A stretch of DNA of 64,000 bases from Phaeosaccion multiseriatum (lineage: Eukaryota; Protista; Ochrophyta, other classes), in contig OZ218959.1 of assembly GCA_965112735.1 (NCBI GenBank), forward strand, positions 248,001-312,000, written 5' to 3'. Numbering within the stretch: the stretch's first letter is position 1; each line of letters begins with the position of its first letter. The position numbers and the translations under genes were made by a program. The notes under the pieces were generated by a model that saw only the letters and a program-made list of their open reading frames with translations, searched no databases and had not been told where the DNA came from. Below are positions 9,335-47,799 of the stretch, piece after piece.

Positions 9335-12300
9335 TCACTGCCCCTTTCGACTGCGGGCCTGCACAATGGCGCTCTCGAGCTGCGCGATGAGGGTGCGTTG
9401 GTGCTCCTCCAGAGAAGCGATCTCTGTCATCAGAGCCACCTAAGGGAGGGGGGGTAGGCATATGGGCAGACATGAGGACAGGCATATGGGCAGGTAGGCA
9501 GGCAGGCCGGCAGGCCGGTAGGCAGGCAAACACGCACGAGAAACGGAGGGGGTGAGGAGGGGGTGAGGAGGGGGCGGCTCGCAACAAAAGACAAGACGCT
9601 AATGGGAGGGAGACAAAGGAAAGAAGCACTGGGCTACTAAGCGAGAGCGATTAGTCCTTGGCACTCCGCGCTCTCCCTAGCGCTTCATACGTGATTCTTA
9701 GGTTGATTCCTATGAAGTCAATAACGCTGCCCACCCTCCCCCACCCCCCACCTTGGGATTGAGCACTTGCTCCGCGAGCCTGTTCTTCTCCCTCTTGCGC
9801 TCCTTCTTGTCCTCCTCCATGGCCTTTGCGGCAGCAACATTTGCCTCCAATCTTTCGTGCTCCTCTAGAGGGGGGGGGGCATGGGATGGGACAGGACGAC
9901 CGGTACCGTCAGAGGACTCCGAGTAGAGAGGGACAGGAGGGACAGGAGAGGCGGGAGGGGTCGCAAAAGGGGTGCCATATGGGTGCCGCATCGGTGCCAT
10001 AACGCCATACCGCCCCATGCATGGAACGGACAGTGCAAGTCAAGCAAATGAAGCAAGTGAAAGCTTCTCATCCCCTCCCCTTGCTTTCAAGTACAGGAAA
10101 GCAAATGAAGCAAGTGAAAGCTTCTCATCCCCTCCCCTTGCTTTCAAGTACAGGAAAGCAAATGAAGCAAGTGAAAGCTTCTCATCCCCTCCCCTTGCTT
10201 TCAAGTACAGGAAAGCAAATGAAGCAAGTGAAAGCTTCTCATCCCCTCCCCTTGCTTTCAAGTACAGGAAAGCAAATGAAGCAAGTGAAAGCTTCTCATC
10301 CCCTCCCCTTGCTTTCAAGTACAGGAAAGCAAATGAAGCAAGTGAAAGCTTCTCATCCCCTCCCCTTGCTTTCAAGTACAGGAAAGCAAATGAAGCAAGT
10401 GAAAGCTTCTCATCCCCTCCCCTTGCTTTCAAGTACAGGAAAGCAAATGAAGCAAGTGAAAGCTTCTCACCCCCTCCCCTTGCTTTCAAGTACAGGAAAG
10501 CAAATGAAGCAAGTGAAAGCTTCTCATCCCCTCCCCTTGCTTTCAAGTACAGGAAAGCAAATGAAGGAAGCGAACGCTTCTCATCCCCTCCCCTTCCTTT
10601 CAAGTACAGGAAAGCAAATGAGGCAAGTGAAAGCTTCTCACCCCCCCGCCCCTTGCTTGCTTGCGGGCTTGACCCACCTCGAGCCTTGGCAGCTCTTTGC
10701 TCCAGGGCAAGCTGCAGCGGGTCGTTTGCCTCCTCCTTCTCCTCCTTGGGCCTGCGTGGAAGGGCAGGGCGTGTGTTAGGCTGTGCGTGTGTGTATGCAT
10801 GTGTGGCTGTGTATGCGTGTGTGTGTGTATGCGTGGCTGTGTGTGCGCGCGTGCAGAAGCCATCTCAGCAGACATGGACAGACACGAGTAAGGGCTCGCG
10901 AGCTGCAGCCCAGAGCTGCGAGCACATCACATCACAGCAAAGCACCCTCCCAATCCCCCTGCCCCTCTGCCTGCCTGCCCCTCTGCCTGCCTGCCCCTCT
11001 GCCTGCCTGCCCTTCTACCTGCCTGCCCAGTGCCACTCACCCCTCCACAGCTGCCTGGGCTCCTCGCGGCGGCCTACGCGATCCGACGGCGGTCTTAACC
11101 CTCTGTTGCCCCATCTCAATCACTTTCTCGGCCTTTTCGTAGGCGGCCACGCACGGCAGGCGCTGCAGATAAGCCCCAACAGTACGCTTGCAGCGCTTCC
11201 AGTCCCGCAGGAGGGGGTCGTCACTATCGCTGTCCGCCTCGGCCTTGCCATTGCCCTTGCTGTCATCAGCTCCTCCGCCATGGGCCTCGTGCACTTCGTC
11301 GAAGGCCATGTTGACAACAGCGAACATCATGCTCAGCACCACAAACACCATGAGCAGTACGAAGGAGATGAATAGGAATGGCCCGAGGTAGGGCGCAATC
11401 TCGCGAAGATTGTCGAGCTCGAAGTGCCCGAGTGTTGTGTCGAACAGCGTGGCCAAAGACTCGAAGAAGTCTCTGTAGTCGGCCTCGGTATGTCCAAAAA
11501 CCATCATGAAGGAAATGCCGAAGCCAGAAACCACAATGCCGATAATGATGCAGATGATAACCATCTCGGAGGCGGACCGGCCGAGGGTGGTGACGAAGCG
11601 GGACAGAGAGGGGGAGAAGCTGGCGTGCTCGAAGAACTGAAACATGATGCACACTACATTGATGGCGATGAGGCTGTTGAGGTATTGGTAGTTGGTAGCA
11701 ACATAGAAGAGGGGCATGAAGCGGCTCCTCTCCTCCGCCCGGAGTTCGTCCACCATGTTCATGACCGTCCACGCCACGTTGACGTACAGCGTGAACTGCA
11801 GCGCGAACATTACCACGGAGGAGAAGGTGAAAATGTTCCATACGCTCGCCCACAGCCACTTGAGCCCATGGGTCCTGATGCTAGTCAGCATGCACAGCGT
11901 GCGGTGGAGCACCAACACGCTCATGAGCAGCACCACGCAGAAGTGCTCCCAGTCGAAAGACGCCTTGTGGCTGAGCGTGTCCAGCTCGGATGACAGTACC
12001 CTTGCCCCGAGAAAGACGCCGAATGTGCCCATCTCGAACGAGGGCACCACCGCCCCTTCGGGAGTCACTTCGGCAAGCATCCGGCACACAGTGAGCGTGT
12101 CGGCGACTGGGTTGTAGAGATTGAACTCGAGGAAGATACTCCGTGTTTGAAAGTCAATATAGCCCGCCTGGAATAGGTCCGTGAGGGTTTGCCTGGCCGC
12201 AGTGTAATTGTCGGGCAGTTCTACGACGTAGCCGCTGCCCGGGTAGATGAGTTTGTTAGCGGACCCAACGAAGGTTGTTGTTTGCAGCTCCGAGCTGGAC

Positions 12301-19080: not shown

Positions 19081-21252
19081 TGTGTGGGAGAGAGAGGGTG
19101 TGTGTGTATCCGTGTGAGGGACGGAGAGAGAGAGTATGTTGTGATAGAGAGAGAGGCAGAGAGGGAGAGAGGCGCAAAAGAGCCGCAAAAGAGGCAACCT
19201 CCCCGGCCCAAGTCTAGCCCGAGCCCAAGGCCCGAGGCTAAGGCCAAAGCCAGCCTCGGAGTCCCTAGCATGCCCCCACACGATGCTCTCCTCCTCACCT
19301 CCTCGCCGTCCTGGTCAAGCAGCACCACACCTCGGCACACGGTGAAAGACATGGGCACATGCCCGAACTCCTTCCTCCCCACCGTAGCTCCACCCCCCGG
19401 CTCCTCCTCCCCCCCCACCTCCCCGAGGGCGGCGTCGTAATCATTGGCAGCATACATGCAGTCGAAGGCGCCGCTCTCCTCCAGGTCCCAGAAACGGCTA
19501 ACCTCGTGTAACCGAATGAAACGCACCCCCCTGGCCTCTAGCTTGGCCTCGTAGAAGGCAGCAACCTTGGGGGGCATGAGGCCCGACATAATGTGGGATT
19601 TACGCAACACCACGATGGGTTGGATGGAGCTAGGGGACGGGGGAGAGGAGAGGAGGGGGGGAGGGGGGAGAGGTGAGAGGTGGGCACCACAGGTCTCTCT
19701 CTCTCTCTCTCTCTTGGCTGTTATAAGTTGCTCGACAGCGCCGGAGAAGGCTCATCCGTAGCCCCTTTCACTAAGTCAATAAATACCCCATCTCTCTCTT
19801 GGAGTCGATCCCTCCTCCGCGCCCTGCCCTCGACTCCTGCATCCAAGCACTGTCATGCCCTGCCATCCCCTGCCATCCCCTGCCATCCCCTGCCATCCCC
19901 TGCCATCCCCTGCCATCCCCTGCCATCCCCTGCCATCCCCTGTCATCCCCTGCCATCTTCTCCACTGCCATCCCTTTTCTTCCCTTCCCCCTCCCCATAC
20001 CCCCTCATCCACTGCCATCCCCTCCCCATCCCCCCTTACGTATGGCATACGTACGTGTAGTGTGTGGCCAGTGCCGCCGCCGTCTCCAACACGATGTGCC
20101 CCCCCCCAATCAGCACGACGTTCCGATCCCCTCCGCCCATTCCCGCACCCGAGAATGACCCCGACACTCGGAAGGAAGCCGTCCGGCTCTTGCTGCCCTC
20201 CCCATTCGCGTGGTCGCCGCCATCTGTAGAAAAGGAGAGCCCGTTGCCAATACCACTGCTGCTAGGGGCAAGGGAGGCGATGGTGGAGAAGGCTTTGACG
20301 AGCTTCAGACAGTCGCCCATGGTGCGTAAGCAGTGCACGGAACCGTACCCGCACTTTGTGGAATCGGCCACCTTCGTGCCCTTGATGTCTGGGGGGTGGG
20401 TGGGTGGATGGGTGGGTGGGTGGAGAGAGGGATGGAGGGAGAGGAGGGGAGAGAAGGGGGTCAGACAAGGGGTGAAGGAGAGAGAGCAAGGGAAGGGGAG
20501 AGGGAGAAAGAGAGAGAAGAGAGAGGCAGGGAGAGGGAAGAGAGAGAGAGGGACAGAGAGAGACGAAGAGAGAGAGGGAGAGAGAGATGAAGAGAGAGAG
20601 AGGAAGAGAGAGAGAGAGGGAGAGAGAGACGAAGAGAGAGAGGGAGAGAGAGAGATCAAGAGAGAGAGAGAGGAAGAGAGAGAGAGGAAGAGAGAGAGGG
20701 AGAGAGAGACGAAGAGAGAGAGAGAGGGAGAGAGAGAGGCTGAGGGATCAAGAGACACTATACTATAGAGAATGCGCTGTGCTCCGGCGCCCCCCTCTCT
20801 GCCCCCCTCCCCCCTCGTCGGCTGCCATCCCTCCCTCACGCCCCGTGTGCCTCCAACTCTTATCTACCCACCGGGGTGGTCCAATACGAAGCAGCCCGAG
20901 AGGGCCCCTTGCCCGAACTGCCAAGGCCTACTCCCCGTGGCCACGAGCAACTTGTCCCAGCTGAGGCGCCTCTGCTTGGCCTTGGTGAGGGTCTTGCCCT
21001 TCTCGTTAACCTTGAGAGGGGGGAAGGGGAGATGGCAACAGATGGCAGGGTGGGGGGTCAGGGCGGGCGGCTCATTGCGAGCAGAAGGGTGGGAGGGTGG
21101 GAGGGTGGGGGGGGGTGCACAAGAGGGAGGGAGCCGGGGAGAGGAGGCGAGAGGGAGCTAGCCCTTCCCCCTCCATTCGGCAAGGCAAGGACACTGACCC
21201 CCAAATTCAAGACCCGACGCGTCGCGTCTTGTCTCAATCTCTCTTGTCCTCC

Positions 21253-23090: not shown

Positions 23091-23189
23091 CTCTCATGAT
23101 GGTCATGCGGCATGAGCTCTGCGTGTGCCTATGGCCGTATGGCCTATCGCCGCATGGCCTATTGCCCCCTATTGCCGTATGGTCTATTC

Positions 23190-23296
23190 GGCCCCTGACA
23201 TGCTTCTGAGGCGACCCTGCTTCCTGCTTCTGGCCGGCGCCAGCCGGCCTGTTTCCTGCTTCTGGGCTGGCCTGTCTCAGAAGCATGTCAGGGGCC
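23190..23296. mobile_element. Putative 107-bp MITE-like element with perfect 21-bp terminal inverted repeats
   Basis: ggcccctgacatgcttctgag (23190-23210) is the exact reverse complement of ctcagaagcatgtcaggggcc (23276-23296). A diverged partial copy lies at 52720-52779. No clean TSD is visible. Confidence 0.55.
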
Positions 23297-23318: not shown

Positions 23319-26300
23319 CTATTGCCAGAAAGCGGCCACACTCTCAAACGTCTCCCTGGGCTTGAGCAGCTCTAGGCGGAAGCTCTGGGCCTCCTCCCGC
23401 CCCTCCTCCTCCACCCCGTCCTGCTGTAGCACCAACTGCTCACTCAGGTAGCCGTACACCGCCGGCGCGGGTCGGCTGCAGTGCCTGCTGAAGAGCGAGA
23501 GCGTGTTTGCACCTGTATCGTGTAGTACCAACAGGTCCCCTGCCCGCAGCTCCGCAGGCAAAGGCGCCCCTCTGGCCAGGTAGTCCCCTCCGAAGCACAG
23601 CGGCCCCGCCACATCTGTGTTGGCCAATAGCCCGCCCCCTGTCCGCCCCCCTCCTTCTCCTTCTCTTCCTTCTCCTCCTTGTCCACTCGGCTTGTAGGGA
23701 AGGCCCTCGCTGGTGAAGGCGCTGAGGCGATGCGTCGCCATTTGGGGGGCGTAGCACTCCCTCGGGAACAGGTCGGAGCCCCCGTGGGTGATGACAGTGC
23801 GCGTGGCGCCCTCCCCTCCTCCCTCCTCGTTCTCCCTCACGTACTCAACCTTGAGAACGGTAAAGGCCGCCTTCGCCACGAGTGCCCGTCCATACTCCGT
23901 GTACACCGTCCTTCGTGTGTTGCTCCACAGACTCGGCGCCGCCTTCTGCAGCTGATGAGCGTAGTGCGCAAAGGAGGGAGTTACCTCCTCTCCAGCGTAG
24001 TTGGCCGGCAGCCCCCCGCCAATGTCCAGTATGGAGACCCTTCCCTCTCCGAAGGTGGCCTCAATCTCGTCTGCCAATTCTGTAACCGCCTGGGCTCCGC
24101 TCAGCATCTGTTCCAGAGAGCACCCTTGAGAGCCAACGTGCACATGCAGTCCCGTCAGCCAAGGCCAGCGGCTCACGCGCCCACCACGCCCACCACTGCC
24201 TGTATCTCGGTCTGTTCCGAAGGCGGCGATGACGGCCTTGCGACCCTTGTCCGTGAGCGGCACCCCAAACTTGCTGCTGGCGGTACTGACGCTGAGCTCC
24301 GAGATACGGCCTGCACCCACCAGGGGGTTCACACGCAGACCCACACGCAGCGGCTCTTGCCCGTGCTCGGTCCGGCCCTGCCCTATGCAATCCTGCCCCT
24401 GCCCCAAGCGGTGTCGCTCGATGAGACCGGCCACTCGCTCGAGCTCTTCCAGGCTGTTGGCGTTGACGAGCACCCCCCTGGAGAGCGCGAAGAGCAGCTC
24501 TGCCTCCGTCTTGCAGGGCGAGTCAAACACCACCTTCTGCGGCGCGGCCCCTGCCAGCAGCGCCAACCGTACCTCGTTGATGCTCGCACACTCTAGCCCC
24601 AGGGAACGGCCCTGACCCTGACCCTGACCCTGACCCTGACCCTGACCCTTACCCTCGCCCTGTGAGCGCTCACCCTCCTGCCGAGCAGCGCTCACACTGT
24701 CTCTGAGCACAAAGGCCAAAGGGGCGGCCTTCACCGCGAGGCAGTGCTGCCAGTGGGCAGGGAAAGCCGCACATAGCGAGCGCCGCGCCTCGGACAAGGC
24801 GTCCAGAGAGTACACTACCGCAGCGCCGCCCCCCTCGGGACTGTCCAGCGCCGCCATAAGAGCTGCCTCCCCCCCTGGGAAGACCTCTTCGTGCTGCTGC
24901 TGCTGCTGCTGCTGTTGTAGCACCAACTGGCGCGCGGCCGACGGGCCTAACAGGCCTCCGCTTGCCATGTGCTGCAGCACCAGTGGCACGTCCCTGTCGC
25001 GCACCGAGCCGAGGGTATGCGTACTGGCACCAGTTGGTGATACGCCCCTCGCCCCCCTTGCTTGCCCTTCTTGGACGTGCTCGTCTGCCTCGCCCGGCCC
25101 CTGCCTTTGCTTCAGCTCTTGTTTCTGCTCCTGGTCCTGGTCCTCCTCCTTCTTCTGTTGCTTCTCCTCCTGCGCCTTGAGCGTGTGCCAGTGCTTAGCG
25201 ATTAGGCAAAGCTTGTCAACACACAACGCGTCCTGCAGCAGAGAGGCGCGAACAGCCTGCCCCGCCCCCCCCTCTGCTAAGTCGCTCTCCTCCCCTGCAA
25301 CGTTGCCCTCCCCTCCACCCCGGAACCAGCTGGTCACCGTCTCCGCTCCCAAGGCAATGCGTAGCACTGCGAGCGAGGAGCTGCCCAGCTTGACGGGTTG
25401 GCCAAGCAGACATGGCACCTTGGAAACCGCCAGCTCTTGGGCACTCAGAGCCATCTGTCTGCCACCTGCCTCCTCCTTGAGGAGGGTCGGGCTCAGGTCT
25501 TCTCCCAGCAGCTTGTGGACTCGCTTCAGCTGCTCAAACGTCAGAAGCACTTCGGGAGCCGCCGCACAAGCGCCCCCTCCACCACACGAGTTGGTTCGGC
25601 CTTCTGCACTAGTCGGGGGGGGGGGAGGCTCCCTGGACACCTTGACCAGCAGGGACACGATCGAGTTGTCGTCCCCGCAGCGCGAGAGGGGCAGAGAGGG
25701 GAGAGGAGAGAGAGAAGCCGAACAAGAAGAAGAAGAAGAAGAAGAAGAAGAAGAAGAAGAAGAAGAAGAAGAGCAAGAGGGAGAAGAGGGAGAGTGTCCC
25801 CCCCCCTCCTCCTCCTCCTCCTCCTCCTCCTCCTCCGTCTCCGGGTGGCGCTGCTGGTCAGGCAGCACGCTCAGAGCGGGCCATCGGAAGGCTGCAAGCT
25901 GCTGCACCCCTCGCACCCACTGCTGCACACACGCATTGACCTTTGCCGGGGACAAGCTCTGCAGCTCGGTTATCGTGTCCATCGCCGCTGCCCACCGCAG
26001 GCACAGACCAACGTTCCGTTTCGAGCTCGAGCAAAGGGAGGAGGAGGAGGAGGAGGAGGAGGAGGAGGAGGGGAACGAGCCTTCCAGCGCTGTCGCCATT
26101 TGTGGGGCCTCGAACACCGTCATGTAGTCCCTCAGCCCCGCCGGCACTTGTCGCGCCCTCATAGCCTCACTCAGCTCTCTGCCCAGACTGTCTGACGGCA
26201 GAGCCACGGCTCCGCAGAAGGGCGGCCCTCCATAGAACTTGCTGCCCGTAAGTAGCACCAACGCGTCCAGTTGGTGCATCATGTGTGCAAGGGCGGAGAG

Positions 26301-28487
26301 CTCGGTGCGCAGCTGGCAGGCGTCGATGACCACGAGCAGACGGGCGCCGTGCTGCCGCTTCAGGTCCCTCACGAGGTTGGGGTCCGGGTGGCACAGACCC
26401 GTCTTGCTACCCAACACCAGGTGGAGCACCACCACGCGATGCGGGGCATCTGTGAGCGCAGCGGCCACCGCGGTAGACACCTCCCGGCGCCGCTCTGTGT
26501 ACCCGCCCGTTGCGTCTCGCGTGGGCATGGCCAGAACCTGCACCTCTCTCTCCTTCATGCCCTCCAGCAACACCCCGCTGCGGAGCCCCCTGCCCGACGG
26601 AGCAAGGGCGCTGAAGTGCTTCCCTCCCGCCGCGTTGGCTGTCCCGCTACCCACCTCTCCCCCCGCACACACAATCGACGTGACGAGGGGGAAGGAGCTG
26701 GAGGTGTCATCGGTCGTGCCAGGATTTCCCAAGAGGCGAAGGGCGCGGTGCCTAGCCAGCAACATAGGGATGAACTCGGCGTCCGACCCCGAGGGGGTGA
26801 GGAGGCATTGAGTGCCCATAGGACTGGTGCCGCTGCTGCTGCTGTTTCCGTTGCCATCGACATGAGCAGCGGAAGGAGTGCTCCCACCATTCCTCCGTCC
26901 ACTACCACTGCCGCCGCGGACGCCCTTGCTCGCATGGCTCGCCACGACCACGCCCACCGCCTCATCCTCGTCCTGCTGCTCTGGCAGCCCCGCCCCGCCA
27001 CCCGAAGGGATGGCAGCCAACGGAATGGTAGAGGGAGTAGGAGTGAGCAGCTGCGCGAGCTCGGAGGCGATAGCGGCGGTGCACTGAGCGAAACCGTCGC
27101 TGCCCTCTCTCACGCACTCCAAGAGGAGGCGCTCTCGAAGTCGGTCCGCCCTGTCGAAGCCCTCCTTGCTCACAGTATTGCAGGTGCAGGAGGACCGCAG
27201 CACGGCCCCCTGGTGTGGGTGCGGGTGCGGCCTACCATGGTACTTGTTGGTCCTTTTGCCAGCCGCATAGTCCACAGTCGTTCTATCGTCCCCACCCGAG
27301 GACAGGAGGCGCTCTGTGCGCACGGCGTAAGGCTTGGCGAGCAGAAAGGCCTCCACCAGCGCTTCGGGCAGAGCCGAGGCGGGGCCCAGCTTGGCGCGTC
27401 CCCCCTGGGAGAGTGCGTCTAAGGTTTCTGCAGCGGTGTCGGTGAGGGGGAAGCCCCGGGCCTGCAAGCGCGTTAGCAAGGCCGCCTCCTCCTGGTCGGG
27501 ATGCCGCTCCAACTCTGCGGGGGAGTAAGTGGACAGGTAGGAAAGACGAAGGTGGTCCAGCAGCAGACCCAGCAGATTCGCTCCCAGGGTGTTGTTGTTG
27601 TTGTTGTTGTTGTTGTTGTCATCATGGTCCGCGTCACTGGCATGTTCAGTGTCACTGCCCTCCTCCTCCTCCTCCTCCTCCTCCTCCTCCTGGTTGGGGG
27701 ACTTGTTGTTGGGTCTGCCCTTCTCGCCCTTCTTGTTGCCTCCTCCCCTGCTCCTAGCGGCCACCTGCATGCACGCAGCCTCCAGACTGAGCGAGTCAAG
27801 TCGCTCGAACATGTCGAGGGCGCCGCTCCTCGTGCCAAGGTCCAGGGAGCCTTGCAAGTCCTTGGGGCTGCCGTGCCTTTGCCACATGGGGAGCAATTCA
27901 GGCAGCATGTCCAAGGCCTTTCCTTCTAATGCCTCGCCCTCCGCCTCCTCCTGCTGCCGCTGGTGGTGGTGGTGCTGCTTGTGGTGATGATGGTGCTGCT
28001 GCTGCCGACCTTGGAGCGGGGCGGGGGGGGAGGGCTGCCGTCTGGGCCTGCCAAGGGCCGCTGTGCTGAGCTCAACCACGAACGAGTCACCCTTCCTAAT
28101 GCTGGCAGTGGGTAGCACCTCCCTTCCGAGGTCTCCGTGCAGGCTTGCGGGAAGGCGGGAGCCATCCTCGACAGCGACAGACATGTCTGTCGTCAAAGAA
28201 GCTGGTGCCCGACGTGCCCACTCTGGCTGGAAGGTCAGGTCCGACAGGTCCTCTGTGGAGCGAGGCTCGACTCCTTGCACTTGTGCAGACTGAGAGACCC
28301 TGCTTGGAGGGAGAGGTATCAGGTGGAGCCAACGACAGGGGTGGGGGGAGAGGGATGGGCGGACGGCCCTTGAGTGTTGAAGTCGTTCACTTAACCGTCC
28401 GAGGTCGGCAGGGGACAAAAAAGATATTGCAAAGAGCAGGAAGCAAACAGAGTGGAGCAGCGCCGCAGAAAGAGTACCCCGCAGCAT
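23319..28487 (-). CDS. Fusion protein: fold-type-I PLP-dependent (class V aminotransferase/Cys-desulfurase-like) domain + diaminopimelate/ornithine decarboxylase-like (fold-type III) domain
   Basis: Uninterrupted 1722-aa ORF. Domain 1 has SSCTCN, LLTPSGSDAE, VIDACQLR, LLTGSKFYGGPPFCGA and LGQPV. Domain 2 has AVKAAPL, ECASINE, FDSPCKT, NANSLEEL, GLRVNP, SKFG, GLHVHVGSQ, LDIGGG, TEYGRAL, AGPLCFGGD and HDTGA. The 5' end is uncertain (acceptor-like site near 28300). Confidence 0.85.
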   Translation of the reverse strand: MLRGTLSAALLHSVCFLLFAISFLSPADLGRLSERLQHSRAVRPSLSPHPCRWLHLIPLPPSRVSQSAQVQGVEPRSTEDLSDLTFQPEWARRAPASLTTDMSVAVEDGSRLPASLHGDLGREVLPTASIRKGDSFVVELSTAALGRPRRQPSPPAPLQGRQQQHHHHHKQHHHHQRQQEEAEGEALEGKALDMLPELLPMWQRHGSPKDLQGSLDLGTRSGALDMFERLDSLSLEAACMQVAARSRGGGNKKGEKGRPNNKSPNQEEEEEEEEEEGSDTEHASDADHDDNNNNNNNNNTLGANLLGLLLDHLRLSYLSTYSPAELERHPDQEEAALLTRLQARGFPLTDTAAETLDALSQGGRAKLGPASALPEALVEAFLLAKPYAVRTERLLSSGGDDRTTVDYAAGKRTNKYHGRPHPHPHQGAVLRSSCTCNTVSKEGFDRADRLRERLLLECVREGSDGFAQCTAAIASELAQLLTPTPSTIPLAAIPSGGGAGLPEQQDEDEAVGVVVASHASKGVRGGSGSGRRNGGSTPSAAHVDGNGNSSSSGTSPMGTQCLLTPSGSDAEFIPMLLARHRALRLLGNPGTTDDTSSSFPLVTSIVCAGGEVGSGTANAAGGKHFSALAPSGRGLRSGVLLEGMKEREVQVLAMPTRDATGGYTERRREVSTAVAAALTDAPHRVVVLHLVLGSKTGLCHPDPNLVRDLKRQHGARLLVVIDACQLRTELSALAHMMHQLDALVLLTGSKFYGGPPFCGAVALPSDSLGRELSEAMRARQVPAGLRDYMTVFEAPQMATALEGSFPSSSSSSSSSSSLCSSSKRNVGLCLRWAAAMDTITELQSLSPAKVNACVQQWVRGVQQLAAFRWPALSVLPDQQRHPETEEEEEEEEEEGGGHSPSSPSCSSSSSSSSSSSSSSSSCSASLSPLPSLPLSRCGDDNSIVSLLVKVSREPPPPPTSAEGRTNSCGGGGACAAAPEVLLTFEQLKRVHKLLGEDLSPTLLKEEAGGRQMALSAQELAVSKVPCLLGQPVKLGSSSLAVLRIALGAETVTSWFRGGGEGNVAGEESDLAEGGAGQAVRASLLQDALCVDKLCLIAKHWHTLKAQEEKQQKKEEDQDQEQKQELKQRQGPGEADEHVQEGQARGARGVSPTGASTHTLGSVRDRDVPLVLQHMASGGLLGPSAARQLVLQQQQQQQQHEEVFPGGEAALMAALDSPEGGGAAVVYSLDALSEARRSLCAAFPAHWQHCLAVKAAPLAFVLRDSVSAARQEGERSQGEGKGQGQGQGQGQGQGRSLGLECASINEVRLALLAGAAPQKVVFDSPCKTEAELLFALSRGVLVNANSLEELERVAGLIERHRLGQGQDCIGQGRTEHGQEPLRVGLRVNPLVGAGRISELSVSTASSKFGVPLTDKGRKAVIAAFGTDRDTGSGGRGGRVSRWPWLTGLHVHVGSQGCSLEQMLSGAQAVTELADEIEATFGEGRVSILDIGGGLPANYAGEEVTPSFAHYAHQLQKAAPSLWSNTRRTVYTEYGRALVAKAAFTVLKVEYVRENEEGGGEGATRTVITHGGSDLFPRECYAPQMATHRLSAFTSEGLPYKPSGQGGEGREGEGGGRTGGGLLANTDVAGPLCFGGDYLARGAPLPAELRAGDLLVLHDTGANTLSLFSRHCSRPAPAVYGYLSEQLVLQQDGVEEEGREEAQSFRLELLKPRETFESVAAFWQ

Positions 28488-28992: not shown

Positions 28993-33109
<4,117 letters not shown>

Positions 33110-44495: not shown

Positions 44496-45275
44496 ATGGG
44501 GGCCAGCAGCAGCAGCAGGGGCGCCAATGGCGAGGAAAGCAGGTCCCTCCTCAGCATGTGCGTCGGTTCTACCATGGACGCCAATGTGTTGTACTTGTTA
44601 GCGGGAAGGCCGCTCGAGCACATCCAGGAGGTGAAGAAAATCGTGCAGGACATTGGGCGAGCAAGCCCAGCTGTGCAGCTGCCAGCCTTCCAGCAGCTCT
44701 TACGCATTGAAGGGAGGATGTTGCATGGCCAGGATACAGGCATAGGAGGACATGACGATGGTCATGGTGGGGGTGGAAGTCATTTTGGTGGAGCATCAGG
44801 GAGGGGGAGGGGAGGAGGGGGGAGAGGAGGAGGAGGAGGAGGAGGAGGAGGAGGAGGAGGAGGAGGAGGAGGAGGAGGAGGAGGAGGAGGAGGAGGAGGA
44901 GGAGGAGGAGGAGGAGGAGGAGGAGGAGGAGGAGGAGGAGGAGGAGGAGGAGGAGTCGCAGCTGCAGCTTCAGCTGCCGCCGCAACAGCCGCAGCAGCCG
45001 CAGCCGCAGCAGAAGCCGCGAAAGCTGTAGCAGCCGCAGGGGCAGAAGGAGGAGGAGGAGGAGGAGGAGGAGGAGGAGGAGGAGGAGGAGGAGGAGGAGG
45101 AGGAGGAGGAGGAGGAGGAGGAGGAGGAGGAGGAGGAGGAGGAGGAGGAGGAGGAGGAGGAGGAGGAGGAGGAGGAGGAGGAGGAGGAGGAGGAGGAGGA
45201 GGAGGAGGAGCCGCAGTCGCAGCAGAAGCCGCGAAAGCTGTAGCAGCCGCAGGCGCGGAAGGAGGAGAAGGAGGA

Positions 45276-45327
<52 letters not shown>

Positions 45328-47799
45328 GAGGAGGAGGAGGAGGAGGAGGAGGAGGAGGAGGAGGAGGAGGAGGAGGAGGAGGAGGAGGAGGAGGAGGAGG
45401 AGGAGGAGGAGGAGGAGGAGGAGGAGGAGGAGGAGGAGGAGGAGGAGGAGGAGGAGGAGGAGGAGGAGGAGGAGGAGGAGGAGGAGGAGGAGGAGGAGGA
45501 GGAGGAGGAGGAGGAGGGGGAGGAGGAGGAGGAGGAGGAGGAGGAGGAGGAGGAGGAGGAGGAGGAGGAGGAGGAGGAGGAGGAGGAGGAGGAGGAGGAG
45601 GAGGAGGAGGAGGAGGAGGAGGAGGAGGAGGAGGAGGAGGAGGAGGAGGAGGAGGAGGAGGAGAGAAAGAAGAAGCCGCAGCTGTAGCTTCAGCTGCCGC
45701 TGCAACAGCCGCAGTAGCCGGAGGAGGAGGCGAAGAGGAAGGAGAAGTATCAGGAGAAGGGGAGCGACGAAAAGAAGAAGGACGAGAAGCAGGAGCGACG
45801 AGAGTAGTAGAGGTAGCAGGAGGAGGAGAAGTAGTGGCAGAGGTAGCAGGCGGGGGAGAGGCAGAAGCCGCAGCAGCCGCAACCGCCGCCGCCGCCGCCG
45901 CAGCAGCAGCAGCAGCAACAGCGGCAGCAGTAGCAGCAGCAGCGGCAGCAGCAGAAGTCGCAGCGGCCGCAACAGCAGCAGCCCCAGCAGGAGGAGGAGG
46001 AGGTGAAGGACAAAAGCCAGTGAAAAAGAAGGCAGGCGAGACTGGGAGGGTAGGAAAGGATGAGGCTCACCACGCTGTGGGCGTCACACCCCTCCACTCT
46101 AGAGAGGGCGGCGCCGCTCCTGGCTCAGCAGGCGGAAGGCACCACGAAGAAGGAGGAATAGGCTCGAGCAGTCTGGGCTCAGCGGCAGCCGCCCACTTGG
46201 CCAACGTGAACGAGAGGGTGGCGGAGCTCTTCGCCTTCCTGGACACCGACCAGAACGGCCTCGTTGACATGGAGGAGGTGAGTGGCTTGCTTGGGAAGAG
46301 GGGGAGGAGAGGGCACGAGGAGGAGGAGAGGAAGGGCCACCACCCACCCACCAGGCTGAGGATCCACTGCTATCTCCGCCCCCCCTCCCCCCCGGATCTA
46401 CTGCACTCCCCCCCCCCCCCCACCTCCCGTCCACTGCCATGCACTGCCATCATCCACTGCCATCCACTGCCATCATCCACTGCTATCTACTGCCACCCAC
46501 TGCCATCCACTGCCATCCACTACCATCCCAGGTCCTGGTGACGATGATCCTCCTGTCGAAGGGCTCTGCGGCGGCGCGCTCGAAACTCATATTCGGTCTC
46601 TTCGACTACGGAGGCCTCGGCTCTCTGCACCTGCACGAAGGAGCCATCGCCATTCGCTCAGTGCTCACCGCCCTCAGCACCATCACCAGAGGGGGTCCTC
46701 CCGACGACGAGCAAGTGCAAGAGGTAGTGGTACAGCTCAACATACCCGAGGCACAGAGCCTGGAGATGGGCCTCACCCAGAGAGAGACTGGGCAGTCCTG
46801 TGGGCAGAGGCAGGAGCAGTCATATGGGCAGGAGCAGGGCTATGGCATGGGACCGGGGCAGAGGTATTGCTTGGAGCAGGGGCAAGAGAAGGTCTCTCTG
46901 CGGCGCTGGATGGATTGGTGCAAGAGTACGAAGGACGTTGCGAGGGTGTTTCGCCTTGTGCAAGCTGCCACCAAGGCGTATGCCATTGGCTTGGAGCAGC
47001 CGCAGCTAAAGGCCTTTGTTGTGGACCCGCCCAAGGCGGAGAAGACCAAAAGGGGCGCGTATAACAAGTAAGGCATGGGAGGGAGGGATGGAGGGAGGGA
47101 GGGAGGGAGGGAGGGAGGGAGGGAGGGAGGGAGGGAGGGAGGGAGGGAGGGAGGGAGGGAGGGAGGGAGGGAGGGAGGGAGGGAGGGAGGGAGGGAGGGA
47201 GGGAGGGAGGGAGGGAGGGAGGGAGGGAGGGAGGGAGGGAGGGAGGGAGGGAGGGAGGGAGGGGAGGGACCAGCCGCCCTCCTACAAGGGGGGGGGCTGA
47301 CCCCCGCCCCCCGCCCATTGCTGCCCCCTATCCACTTGTCGATGTCCCTGAACAACTCCATCAAACCCGACCCATCTAAAATCAACAAACATCCAAACCT
47401 CCAACCATCTGTCTCAACAGGTCCTTTGCGCTCCCCAACGCAAGCCTCTTGCTCGGCGGGGTGGGGCGACGTGGCCAGGCCAAGCTCTCCCCCACCCAGG
47501 GACTGCACAGCAACGTCATCACCACGAGCAGCGGGGGCAAGTTCCATAGAGAGAGCGTGTTGAGTGTCAAGAGAGCCTTCGACACATTGGACAGGGACGG
47601 CTCCGGCTTTGTTGACAGAGTGGCCTGGAGGACGCTGTGCAAGGAGAACAAGGCGGCCCAGGCGCAGGCAATGGGAGGGGATGGAGCCCTTGGATTGGAA
47701 GGGGAGGACATCGTGACCCGCGGACATGCGGCGGAGCTGCTGGAGTCCCTGGGCAGGGGCGAAGAGTGAGTACACGGGCGAGAGGAGGGAAGGCGAGAG

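Follow-up and report, generated by a model that had tools for sequence, protein, structure and literature searches.

A gene of the ochrophyte alga Phaeosaccion multiseriatum that encodes two pyridoxal 5'-phosphate (PLP)-dependent enzymes of different folds in one polypeptide raises the question of what such a protein might do in the cell. The gene is located in a stretch of 64,000 nucleotides (positions 248,001 to 312,000 of contig OZ218959.1, assembly GCA_965112735.1) which was analyzed at its full length and is referred to below as the window. A first-pass annotation of this DNA had noted an uninterrupted open reading frame (ORF) of about 5.1 kb, in which a fold-type-I PLP domain is joined through an E/Q-rich linker to a fold-type-III decarboxylase domain, and had suggested a two-step enzyme for a specialized amine or osmolyte, possibly a sulfonium compound. 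The reading frame is indeed open without interruption over 1722 codons, and the matches of its product to homologous proteins are far beyond chance (best E-values of 1e-103 for the N-terminal domain and 1e-158 for both domains together). The gene is the fused counterpart of a bacterial operon in which a gene of the same N-terminal family is followed by a gene for a decarboxylase of the same clade. The encoded protein is, on balance, probably a bifunctional enzyme, with two PLP catalysts that perform consecutive steps of one small-molecule pathway distinct from lysine biosynthesis.

The family to which the N-terminal domain belongs has no name, and we coin here the label FAM for it. The domain limits (Table 1) are those of profile hidden Markov models (HMMs) made in this analysis from homologs, compared to initial estimates of ~25200-27400 for the fold-type-I domain and ~23319-24830 for the decarboxylase. 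All the PLP-site motifs that had been quoted for the two domains were located and are intact: PSGSDAE (amino acids (aa) 565-571), DACQLR (722-727) and TGSKF (747-751) in FAM; and LAVKAAP (1250-1256), HVHVGSQ (1448-1454), DIGGGLP (1488-1494), TEYGR (1530-1534) and GPLCFGGD (1628-1635) in the decarboxylase. The linker and the unusual C-terminal motifs, in which the Tyr of the usual GAY is replaced (DTGAN, 1657-1661) and an SRHCSR tail follows (1667-1672), were likewise found as described. The presence of two different PLP folds in one polypeptide is borne out by Pfam matches for the C-terminal part and by AlphaFold models for the N-terminal part. No homology was detected for aa 1-329.

Table 1. 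Features of the two-domain gene in the window
Feature	Positions	Strand	Basis or remark
Whole ORF, two-domain FAM-decarboxylase protein, probably bifunctional	23319..28487	minus	5,169 nt, 1722 aa + stop
N-terminal region, aa 1-329, low-complexity (poly-H/Q, poly-E, poly-N)	27501..28487	minus	
FAM domain, aa 330-1106, predicted class-V-like fold-type-I PLP fold	25170..27500	minus	Own profile HMM
Asp722 of D-A-C-Q, predicted pyridine-N-binding Asp, invariant in family	26322..26324	minus	Alignments
Lys750 of T-G-S-K-F, predicted Schiff-base lysine, invariant	26238..26240	minus	Alignments
E/Q-rich linker, aa 1107-1190	24918..25169	minus	85 aa between HMM envelopes
Fold-type-III decarboxylase domain, aa 1191-1722, LysA-related CF/HCSR clade	23322..24917	minus	Own profile HMM
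Lys1253 of L-A-V-K, decarboxylase PLP lysine	24729..24731	minus	Aligned with the lysine of E. coli LysA F-A-Q-K
Specificity region, GPLCFGGD / DTGAN / SRHCSR	23472..23606	minus	Alignment with LysA

The FAM domain showed no match in Pfam, in NCBIfam or among the sequences of the PDB, whether the query was the single sequence or a 19-sequence profile. A word-indexed search with this domain retrieved 47 relatives with E-values down to 6e-103, from Chrysoparadoxa, brown algae, red algae, Capsaspora, Amoebophrya and many metagenomes; in none of the 47 does the FAM part contain a Pfam domain, and in the ESM Atlas the family is listed as "hypothetical protein" without a Pfam assignment. The domain of the window protein gave no match to Aminotran_5 (PF00266), 2 of 26 FAM members matched this family (best E-value 0.035), and a bacterial FAM-decarboxylase fusion (L019, see below) reached 2.7e-4, short of the cut-off. 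No characterized member was found in the openly licensed literature in PMC and bioRxiv, which is only part of the whole literature.

The affinity of FAM becomes apparent from predicted structures. The AlphaFold2 model of the FAM homolog from Capsaspora (pLDDT 90.6) matched fold-type-I PLP enzymes only, and in a structural search of representatives the top positions were occupied by class-V aminotransferases, with Z-scores of 22-23 at 10-14% identity; the nearest neighbors were PhnW, AGT, serine:pyruvate aminotransferase (SPT), NifS-like proteins, C-DES and SerC. TM-scores for this model (P0015) were as high as 0.72 (by target). For the FAM domain of the window protein itself, the mean pLDDT is 79, with a core above 90 and disordered inserts, and comparison with PhnW, AGT and SufS yields Z-scores of 18-19 over ~350-365 residues. 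The five disordered low-complexity inserts map to FAM-domain residues 165-226, 483-492, 566-596, 633-642 and 730-736. On the strength of these models, FAM is predicted to adopt a class-V aminotransferase-like fold-type-I PLP fold.

The conserved residues of the family are compatible with this assignment. Asp722-A-C-Gln725 and Lys750 are invariant in both the 19-sequence and the 26-sequence FAM alignments, and Lys750 comes 28 residues past Asp722; in class-V enzymes, the Schiff-base lysine is located ~26-27 residues beyond the pyridine-binding Asp. From motif and spacing, these two residues are predicted to be the equivalents of the class-V catalytic residues. We take the D-x-x-Q ... S-x-K spacing, together with a C-terminal Arg motif, to be hallmarks of class V; the Arg of the C-terminal L-R-I-A-L-G presumably corresponds to the Arg that binds the alpha-carboxylate in AGT/NifS-type enzymes. 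The family invariants as a whole are GGDDR, NKY, RSSCT, PSGxD, GEVGSG, GSKTG, D-A-C-Q-x-R, T-G-S-K-F-x-G-P-P-F, LRW, GQPV and L-R-x-A-x-G, and the window protein retains the complete set. Two more specific assignments were considered and rejected. A cysteine desulfurase is incompatible with the alignments, neither of which contains an invariant or near-invariant Cys past Lys750, that is, the conserved catalytic Cys loop is lacking; the conserved Cys residues fall in RSSCT and DACQ. Alignment of the FAM profile with E. coli IscS by hhalign gave a probability of 0.4%, a single-sequence target being too weak for such a comparison. The sole basis for a SepCysS-like enzyme was an ESM Atlas feature score of 0.86, a lead only.

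The C-terminal domain can be assigned to the ornithine/diaminopimelate/arginine decarboxylase family with confidence, with 94-99 and 31-34 bits for PF02784 and PF00278, respectively (Pfam cut-offs of ~23 bits), the matches to Orn_Arg_deC_N (E-value 1e-26) and Orn_DAP_Arg_deC (2e-7) covering aa 1296-1659. The PLP Lys, the HxGS and GGG motifs and the catalytic Cys all align with those of E. coli LysA, the diaminopimelate (DAP) decarboxylase. The best NCBIfam match is also LysA (TIGR01048), with a score of 140.3 bits, under the curated equivalog cut-off of 297.9; E. coli LysA, used as a control, scored 487.7, and the bacterial partners and stand-alone members of the same clade that were tested scored 148-220. 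The motifs of the LysA substrate site, C-E-S, E-P-G-R and G-A-Y, are replaced in the window protein by C-F-G, E-Y-G-R and G-A-N, and across the specificity region GPLCFGGD corresponds to GPLCESGD of LysA, DTGAN to DTGAY, and SRHCSR to SNYNSR. The domain is thus related to LysA and yet fails every LysA criterion tested, because its score is below the cut-off and the motifs are changed; in this respect the first-pass annotation, which did not consider it a canonical LysA, was correct.

The same changes define a clade. In an alignment of the window protein, E. coli LysA, bacterial decarboxylases encoded next to FAM genes and eukaryotic fusions, all but LysA have in common a signature that consists of FDSPxKT; T-E-[FY]-G-[RKQS]; G-P-L-C-F-x-G-D; G-A-[NY]...S-[RK]-H-C-S-R; and a C-terminal FW tail. 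About 175 relatives share this signature: Phe follows the catalytic Cys in each of 55 sequences that are partners or fused, and likewise in each of the 120 best stand-alone relatives, and the position of the Arg in EPGR is variously occupied by R, K, Q or S within the clade. Beyond the stramenopiles, stand-alone decarboxylases with the full C-F/SRHCSR combination were observed in the chytrid Batrachochytrium salamandrivorans (P0186) and the cryptophyte Guillardia theta (P0177).

The great length of the ORF makes it necessary to consider the possibility that the gene model is an artefact, with two adjacent genes read through, or with low-complexity stretches that are in fact in-frame introns. 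At 1722 aa, the window protein exceeds all others of its family in length, the fused relatives having 886-1486 aa and a linker of typically ~20 aa; its own linker of 85 aa contains an in-frame methionine (M1174), several inserts resemble microsatellites, brown algae possess the two domains as separate genes, and the only sequencing runs found for this genome look genomic rather than RNA-derived. We nevertheless regard an artefact as unlikely, given that the 5.1 kb are free of stop codons with coding-type base composition across the linker, that the conserved blocks all share a single frame, that the removal of in-frame inserts would leave the domains joined, and that 51 database proteins, one of them a transcript-derived ORF from Ochromonas, have their domains in the identical order. 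Specifically, the G+C content of third codon positions (GC3) is 0.70-0.83 from approximately codon 100 to the stop, linker (0.77) included, whereas the first ~100 codons are at background level (0.57). Translation may therefore truly begin at M102 or further downstream (M194 and M201 are further alternatives), and part of codons 1-100 may belong to the 5' untranslated region. The exact protein has no entry in the public protein collection. The four runs that contain this stretch, of unrecorded kind, all come from one sample; the contigs built from them follow the order of the window and are broken at simple repeats only; a few apparent joints with sides of 20-21 nt lie within repeats and were disregarded.

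The two-domain architecture itself is not new, contrary to what had been supposed for this gene. A search with both domains returned fused proteins in each oomycete genus sampled, mostly under the name "diaminopimelate decarboxylase", as well as in Ochromonas, Chlorochromonas and many environmental sequences, and the order FAM-then-decarboxylase was confirmed by HMMs in at least 51 database proteins in addition to the window. In the Ochromonas sequence P0064, an MMETSP transcript, a single ORF encodes both domains, so in this relative they share one mRNA. The oomycete fusion was reported in 2009 as an unknown domain plus a decarboxylase, the N-terminal part being described as conserved but of no known function (Morris et al., PMC2705460). 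The window gene accordingly is an unusually long addition to a conserved fusion family. In a FAM tree of 185 rows constructed with FastTree, the window protein is placed with support (SH-like 96) in a clade whose 57 rows include 50 FAM-decarboxylase fusions, with Chrysoparadoxa and brown algae as the nearest neighbors; on this N-domain tree, the fusions of eukaryotes are united in a single supported clade. The family as a whole is spread over many bacterial phyla; among eukaryotes, it is present in every oomycete sampled, in golden and brown algae, in diatoms and red algae and in a few opisthokonts. The eukaryotic genes may have arisen by horizontal transfer, as raised in the first-pass annotation.

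Fusions of FAM to other partners were observed as well. In diatoms (P0092, P0109 and 17 others, for example, in Mediolabrus comicus), a full glutamine-dependent asparagine synthetase (GATase and Asn_synthase domains) is located N-terminal to FAM; the clade of these proteins is the sister of FAM genes of Bacteroidota and cyanobacteria that adjoin a fold-III decarboxylase gene and, in some cases, an AsnB-like gene. One metagenomic protein combines FAM with a 3'-phosphoadenosine 5'-phosphosulfate (PAPS) reductase.

To what end the two domains are joined is indicated by the genomic context of FAM in bacteria. A scan of one genome per species identified at least 586 FAM loci, in accord with the initial impression of an uncharacterized family abundant in bacteria; the neighbors of the best 80 loci were clustered and representatives were annotated. 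In Bacteroidota, Planctomycetota, Myxococcota, Calditrichota, a cyanobacterium and others, the FAM gene is located directly 5' of a gene for a C-F/HCSR decarboxylase. The stop of the former and the start of the latter overlap by 4 nt in L005, L024, L030, L064 and L070, the two genes are 1 nt apart in L014, and in a member of the Sphingobacteriaceae (L019) they are fused to encode a protein of 964 aa. A reciprocal search that started from the decarboxylase led to a TARA scaffold on which a FAM gene (416 bits) is located 5 nt upstream. A gene for an MfnA-like group-II decarboxylase is found directly upstream of FAM in Verrucomicrobiota, Actinomycetota, Chloroflexota and some Pseudomonadota. In Alphaproteobacteria, the order is FAM, RimK-like ATP-grasp ligase and Ddc/PanP-like group-II decarboxylase, and these also occur as double and triple fusions. 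Among the alphaproteobacterial loci, L004:7949-11668, L052:1694-5407 and L062:7817-11572 encode chains of ~1240 aa in which a group-II decarboxylase and FAM flank a middle region of ~230 aa, possibly an ATP-grasp domain.

Genes for ATP-grasp proteins (PF14397 "sugar-transfer associated", RimK-like, or large) or for AsnB-like proteins recur beside the FAM-decarboxylase pair. Frequent neighbors of FAM also include Wzm/Wzt, Wzx, glycosyltransferases (GT2/GT4), a sulfotransferase, a GlcA-epimerase-like gene and GGT, and, in other loci, the flagellar hook-associated FlgE/K/L together with a tetratricopeptide-repeat glycosyltransferase. Taken together, the recurrent fusion, the translationally coupled operons, the replacement of the partner and the recurrent presence of ATP-dependent amide ligases argue for successive action of FAM and the decarboxylase on a single metabolite and, in bacteria, for a subsequent ligation of the product, in many cases for surface glycans. 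That the partner can be swapped for a non-homologous enzyme of the same chemistry points to decarboxylation as the step it performs. The coupled two-step role that had been proposed for the window protein is thus strongly backed by the bacterial operons with their 4-nt gene overlaps.

The principal alternative to a dedicated pathway is that the fusion is the terminal enzyme of lysine biosynthesis, with FAM replacing DAP epimerase or acting in a DapL-like manner and the C-terminal domain decarboxylating DAP. Epimerases of the class-V fold are known, such as isopenicillin N epimerase; LysA is the top-scoring named family for the C-terminal domain, and some C-F-type decarboxylases are solitary, like housekeeping genes. 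Furthermore, DapF is absent from Phytophthora genomes, where the fusion Ps128804 is one of three candidate DAP decarboxylases (Morris et al., PMC2705460). All the same, the score of 140 bits is far from the 297.9 required for LysA, the Glu of C-E-S is Phe in all members examined and the Arg of EPGR varies, and in bacterial glycan loci FAM also pairs with group-II decarboxylases and ATP-grasp ligases. FAM is present, too, in Capsaspora, a holozoan in which lysine synthesis via DAP is not expected. Another oomycete decarboxylase groups with the bacterial aspartokinase-LysA enzymes (PMC2705460). On this evidence, a role in lysine biosynthesis seems very unlikely.

What the coupled enzymes might do can be sketched as follows. 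The occurrence of FAM alone or with a phosphatase makes it most likely that FAM acts first and supplies the amino acid for the decarboxylase. FAM would make an unusual alpha-amino acid, either by transamination of a 2-oxo acid or by beta-replacement, and the distal group of this amino acid would probably be anionic rather than an amino group (phospho-, sulfo-, phosphono- or carboxy-). Its irreversible conversion into the matching amine would then fall to the decarboxylase; phosphoethanolamine, taurine, 2-aminoethylphosphonate and beta-alanine are candidates for this amine. In bacteria, an ATP-grasp or AsnB-like ligase would attach the amine, often in the context of cell-surface glycan loci, whereas in the alga the free amine could be the end product. 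Both folds being obligate dimers, the fusion protein should assemble to a higher order, keeping the active sites close to one another. The loss of the LysA Glu and the gain of a basic R/K-H pair suggest the anionic distal group, and the same is suggested by the aspartate/diaminobutyrate (DABA)-type group-II partners, the invariant basic residues of FAM and the structural proximity to PhnW, SerC and AGT.

Several observations weigh against a dedicated two-step enzyme or limit its generality. In the closest relatives found, Chrysoparadoxa and Pylaiella, the FAM gene is separate, with no decarboxylase gene within 10 kb, and brown algae (Laminaria, Ectocarpus, Scytosiphon) own stand-alone decarboxylases of the same signature clade, so that fused and split states coexist among close relatives. 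FAM occurs alone in red algae, Capsaspora and Gemmatimonadales; its coupling to a decarboxylase is therefore frequent, not obligatory. In Acetobacteraceae, the place of the decarboxylase is taken by a phosphatase of the His_Phos_1 family. Decarboxylases of the C-F type from Desulfovibrio ferrophilus and similar organisms (with SRYNSR) stand alone in a housekeeping-looking context, with FAM not nearby, and could be the LysA of those organisms, in which case the C-F motif by itself does not exclude DAP as a substrate. The roles of the LysA motif residues, and with them part of the case for an anionic substrate, are assumed from LysA crystal structures; the order of the steps, with FAM first, and the assignment at the level of substrates are what we infer from context; the FAM tree, obtained by one method only, contains long branches; and, as noted, the only runs found for the alga look genomic. 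The bifunctional enzyme acting outside lysine biosynthesis remains, in our view, the reading that best accommodates the recurrent fusions and coupled operons.

The phosphatase-linked genes form a distinct arrangement, FtsK - pseudouridine synthase - FAM - phosphatase, which was observed in L043, L057, L076 and 10 other loci of Acetobacteraceae; in Gluconobacter and Saccharibacter the stop of FAM overlaps the start of the phosphatase gene. This coupling hints at a phosphorylated substrate or product.

A more specific version of the two-step proposal, which we put forward tentatively and hold to be rather doubtful as it stands, is that FAM and its dedicated decarboxylase constitute an undescribed, widespread pathway that yields a head group of the aminoethyl type. 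In this scheme, FAM would produce O-phosphoserine from 3-phosphohydroxypyruvate, cysteate via beta-replacement with sulfite, or phosphonoalanine from phosphonopyruvate, and the CF/HCSR decarboxylase would release phosphoethanolamine, taurine or 2-aminoethylphosphonate, respectively. Hints in this direction come from the nearest folds (PhnW, SerC, AGT) and the many invariant Arg and Lys residues of FAM, as well as from the phosphatase in Acetobacteraceae, the Asp/DABA-type group-II partners, the one PAPS-reductase fusion and one neighboring sulfotransferase. No gene for phosphoenolpyruvate mutase was found among the ~45 annotated neighbors, a partial annotation. If true, this route would be an unrecognized source of lipid or osmolyte head groups in stramenopiles, including oomycetes, and a new glycan-decoration module in bacteria.

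The first-pass annotation had also pointed to the synthesis of dimethylsulfoniopropionate (DMSP), such that both domains would act on methionine, S-methylmethionine (SMM) or related sulfonium compounds to yield DMSP or a precursor. The host is a stramenopile alga, and the methylation pathway of DMSP synthesis uses an SMM decarboxylase plus an aminotransferase. In one locus, L070:8601-13083 from the metagenome-assembled genome of a Prochloraceae cyanobacterium, the FAM-decarboxylase pair is flanked by two S-adenosylmethionine (SAM) methyltransferase genes, one for a class-I enzyme and the other for an O-methyltransferase of the PF00891 type, to which DsyB/DSYB also belong. This is the only locus that lends color to a methylated (sulfonium- or betaine-like) product: methyltransferases beside the pair were found in 1 of 78 loci and are not conserved, nor did the loci examined contain a further gene that could be assigned to the metabolism of sulfonium compounds or DMSP. 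The fusion is universal in the non-photosynthetic oomycetes and its bacterial counterparts come from soil, freshwater and acetic-acid bacteria, which leaves the DMSP link without specific support. The suggested analogy with DsyD, which the first-pass annotation listed among LysA-like decarboxylases, does not hold either: DsyD carries PF04115 and is not PLP-dependent, the paper that describes it mentions neither PLP nor DAP decarboxylase (PMC11306096), and its substrate, 4-dimethylsulfonio-2-hydroxybutyrate (DMSHB), has no amino group and hence nothing for a PLP decarboxylase to use. Of the readings considered here, a role in DMSP synthesis is the one to which we attach the least probability, and it appears extremely unlikely.

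Apart from its substrate, the FAM-decarboxylase system has implications for genome annotation. The fusion proteins are usually mislabelled "diaminopimelate decarboxylase" in databases, and reconstructions of lysine pathways in stramenopiles that count the fusion as LysA should be revisited. FAM is a large PLP family without a Pfam or NCBIfam model that is tied to decarboxylases of two unrelated folds and to amide ligases, and as such a well-defined and tractable target for enzymology; in oomycete plant pathogens, the analysis flags a conserved enzyme that is absent from plants and has no assigned role.

The window surrounding the gene has a G+C content of 55-66% and is rich in microsatellites, as revealed by a repeat scan of its whole length. 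A palindromic element at 23188-23296, 23 nt downstream of the stop of the ORF, has arms of ~21 nt (GGCCCCTGACATGCTTCTGAG and its reverse complement); its contig word depth exceeds that of the flanking gene by a factor of several hundred in each of the four runs, which marks it as a very high-copy repeat resembling miniature inverted-repeat transposable elements. Arrays of the 10-mer CCCCTGCCAT / CTGCCATCC are located at 19817-19999, 30276-30398 and 46391-46529. A tandem repeat at 9928-10725 has a period of 57 nt and at least 14 units, with central copies that are 100% identical; it lies mostly within an ORF at 9972-11375 on the plus strand, where it would encode a repeated unit of 19 aa. Within another plus-strand ORF (44496-46541), a very long GAG/GCA trinucleotide tract (44684-45400) specifies poly-E/poly-A/poly-Q, and the GC skew is extreme (0.43) at 44-46 kb.

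Compared with known systems, the closest counterparts of the window protein are the oomycete proteins of the Ps128804 type (Phytophthora, Pythium, Plasmopara, Albugo), which have the same domains in the same order with 34-42% identity, and share its FAM clade and decarboxylase signature; these proteins differ in having ~1200-1300 aa, a ~20-aa linker and none of the long low-complexity inserts, and are equally uncharacterized. FAM resembles the class-V enzymes (PhnW/AEPT, AGT, serine:pyruvate aminotransferase, SerC, NifS/SufS, C-DES) in its predicted fold, with Z-scores of 18-23 over ~350 residues, and in the D-x-x-Q motif, the S-x-K lysine ~27 residues later and the C-terminal Arg of R-x-[AS]-x-G. 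It differs from them in that identity is just 10-16% and PF00266 is not reached, and has features of its own, namely, an N-terminal GGDDR...NKY...RSSCT, a second invariant Lys (GSKTG) and many conserved Arg residues; the conserved Cys loop of the desulfurases NifS and SufS is missing. The C-terminal domain has the same fold-III layout as LysA (TIGR01048), with the PLP Lys, H-x-G-S, GGG and the catalytic Cys, and is set apart by a score less than half the cut-off, by C-F-G, E-Y-G-R and GAN...SRHCSR, and by its conserved C-terminal FW tail. In the aspartokinase-LysA fusion, the partner is aspartokinase, whereas in the window protein it is a second PLP enzyme.

In butirosin biosynthesis, the ATP-grasp protein BtrJ and the LysA-like decarboxylase BtrK act on a carrier-bound substrate that is gamma-glutamylated, in a pathway other than lysine synthesis. 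Among the PDB sequence matches of the C-terminal domain is BtrK (E-value 2e-10), a fold-III, LysA-like protein; the butirosin system has no FAM-like partner, and a carrier protein was not identified in the loci studied here. The capsule module of Campylobacter jejuni includes two enzymes, Cj1436 and Cj1437, from a fold-type-I subfamily other than that of FAM. Within this glycan locus, the set of activities is like that around bacterial FAM genes, by analogy only: Cj1437 is a dihydroxyacetone phosphate transaminase, Cj1436 a serine-phosphate decarboxylase, Cj1438C an ATP-dependent amidoligase and Cj1435 a phosphatase (PMC12409886). A PLP aminotransferase and a PLP decarboxylase are also joined in a naturally fused protein, the diaminobutyrate aminotransferase/L-2,4-diaminobutyrate decarboxylase of Vibrio (PDB 2qma). 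Both halves of this protein are of fold type I (a class-III aminotransferase and a group-II decarboxylase), with no homology to the window protein at the family level; its decarboxylase uses the product of the aminotransferase, which provides a precedent for the logic of the FAM-decarboxylase fusion.

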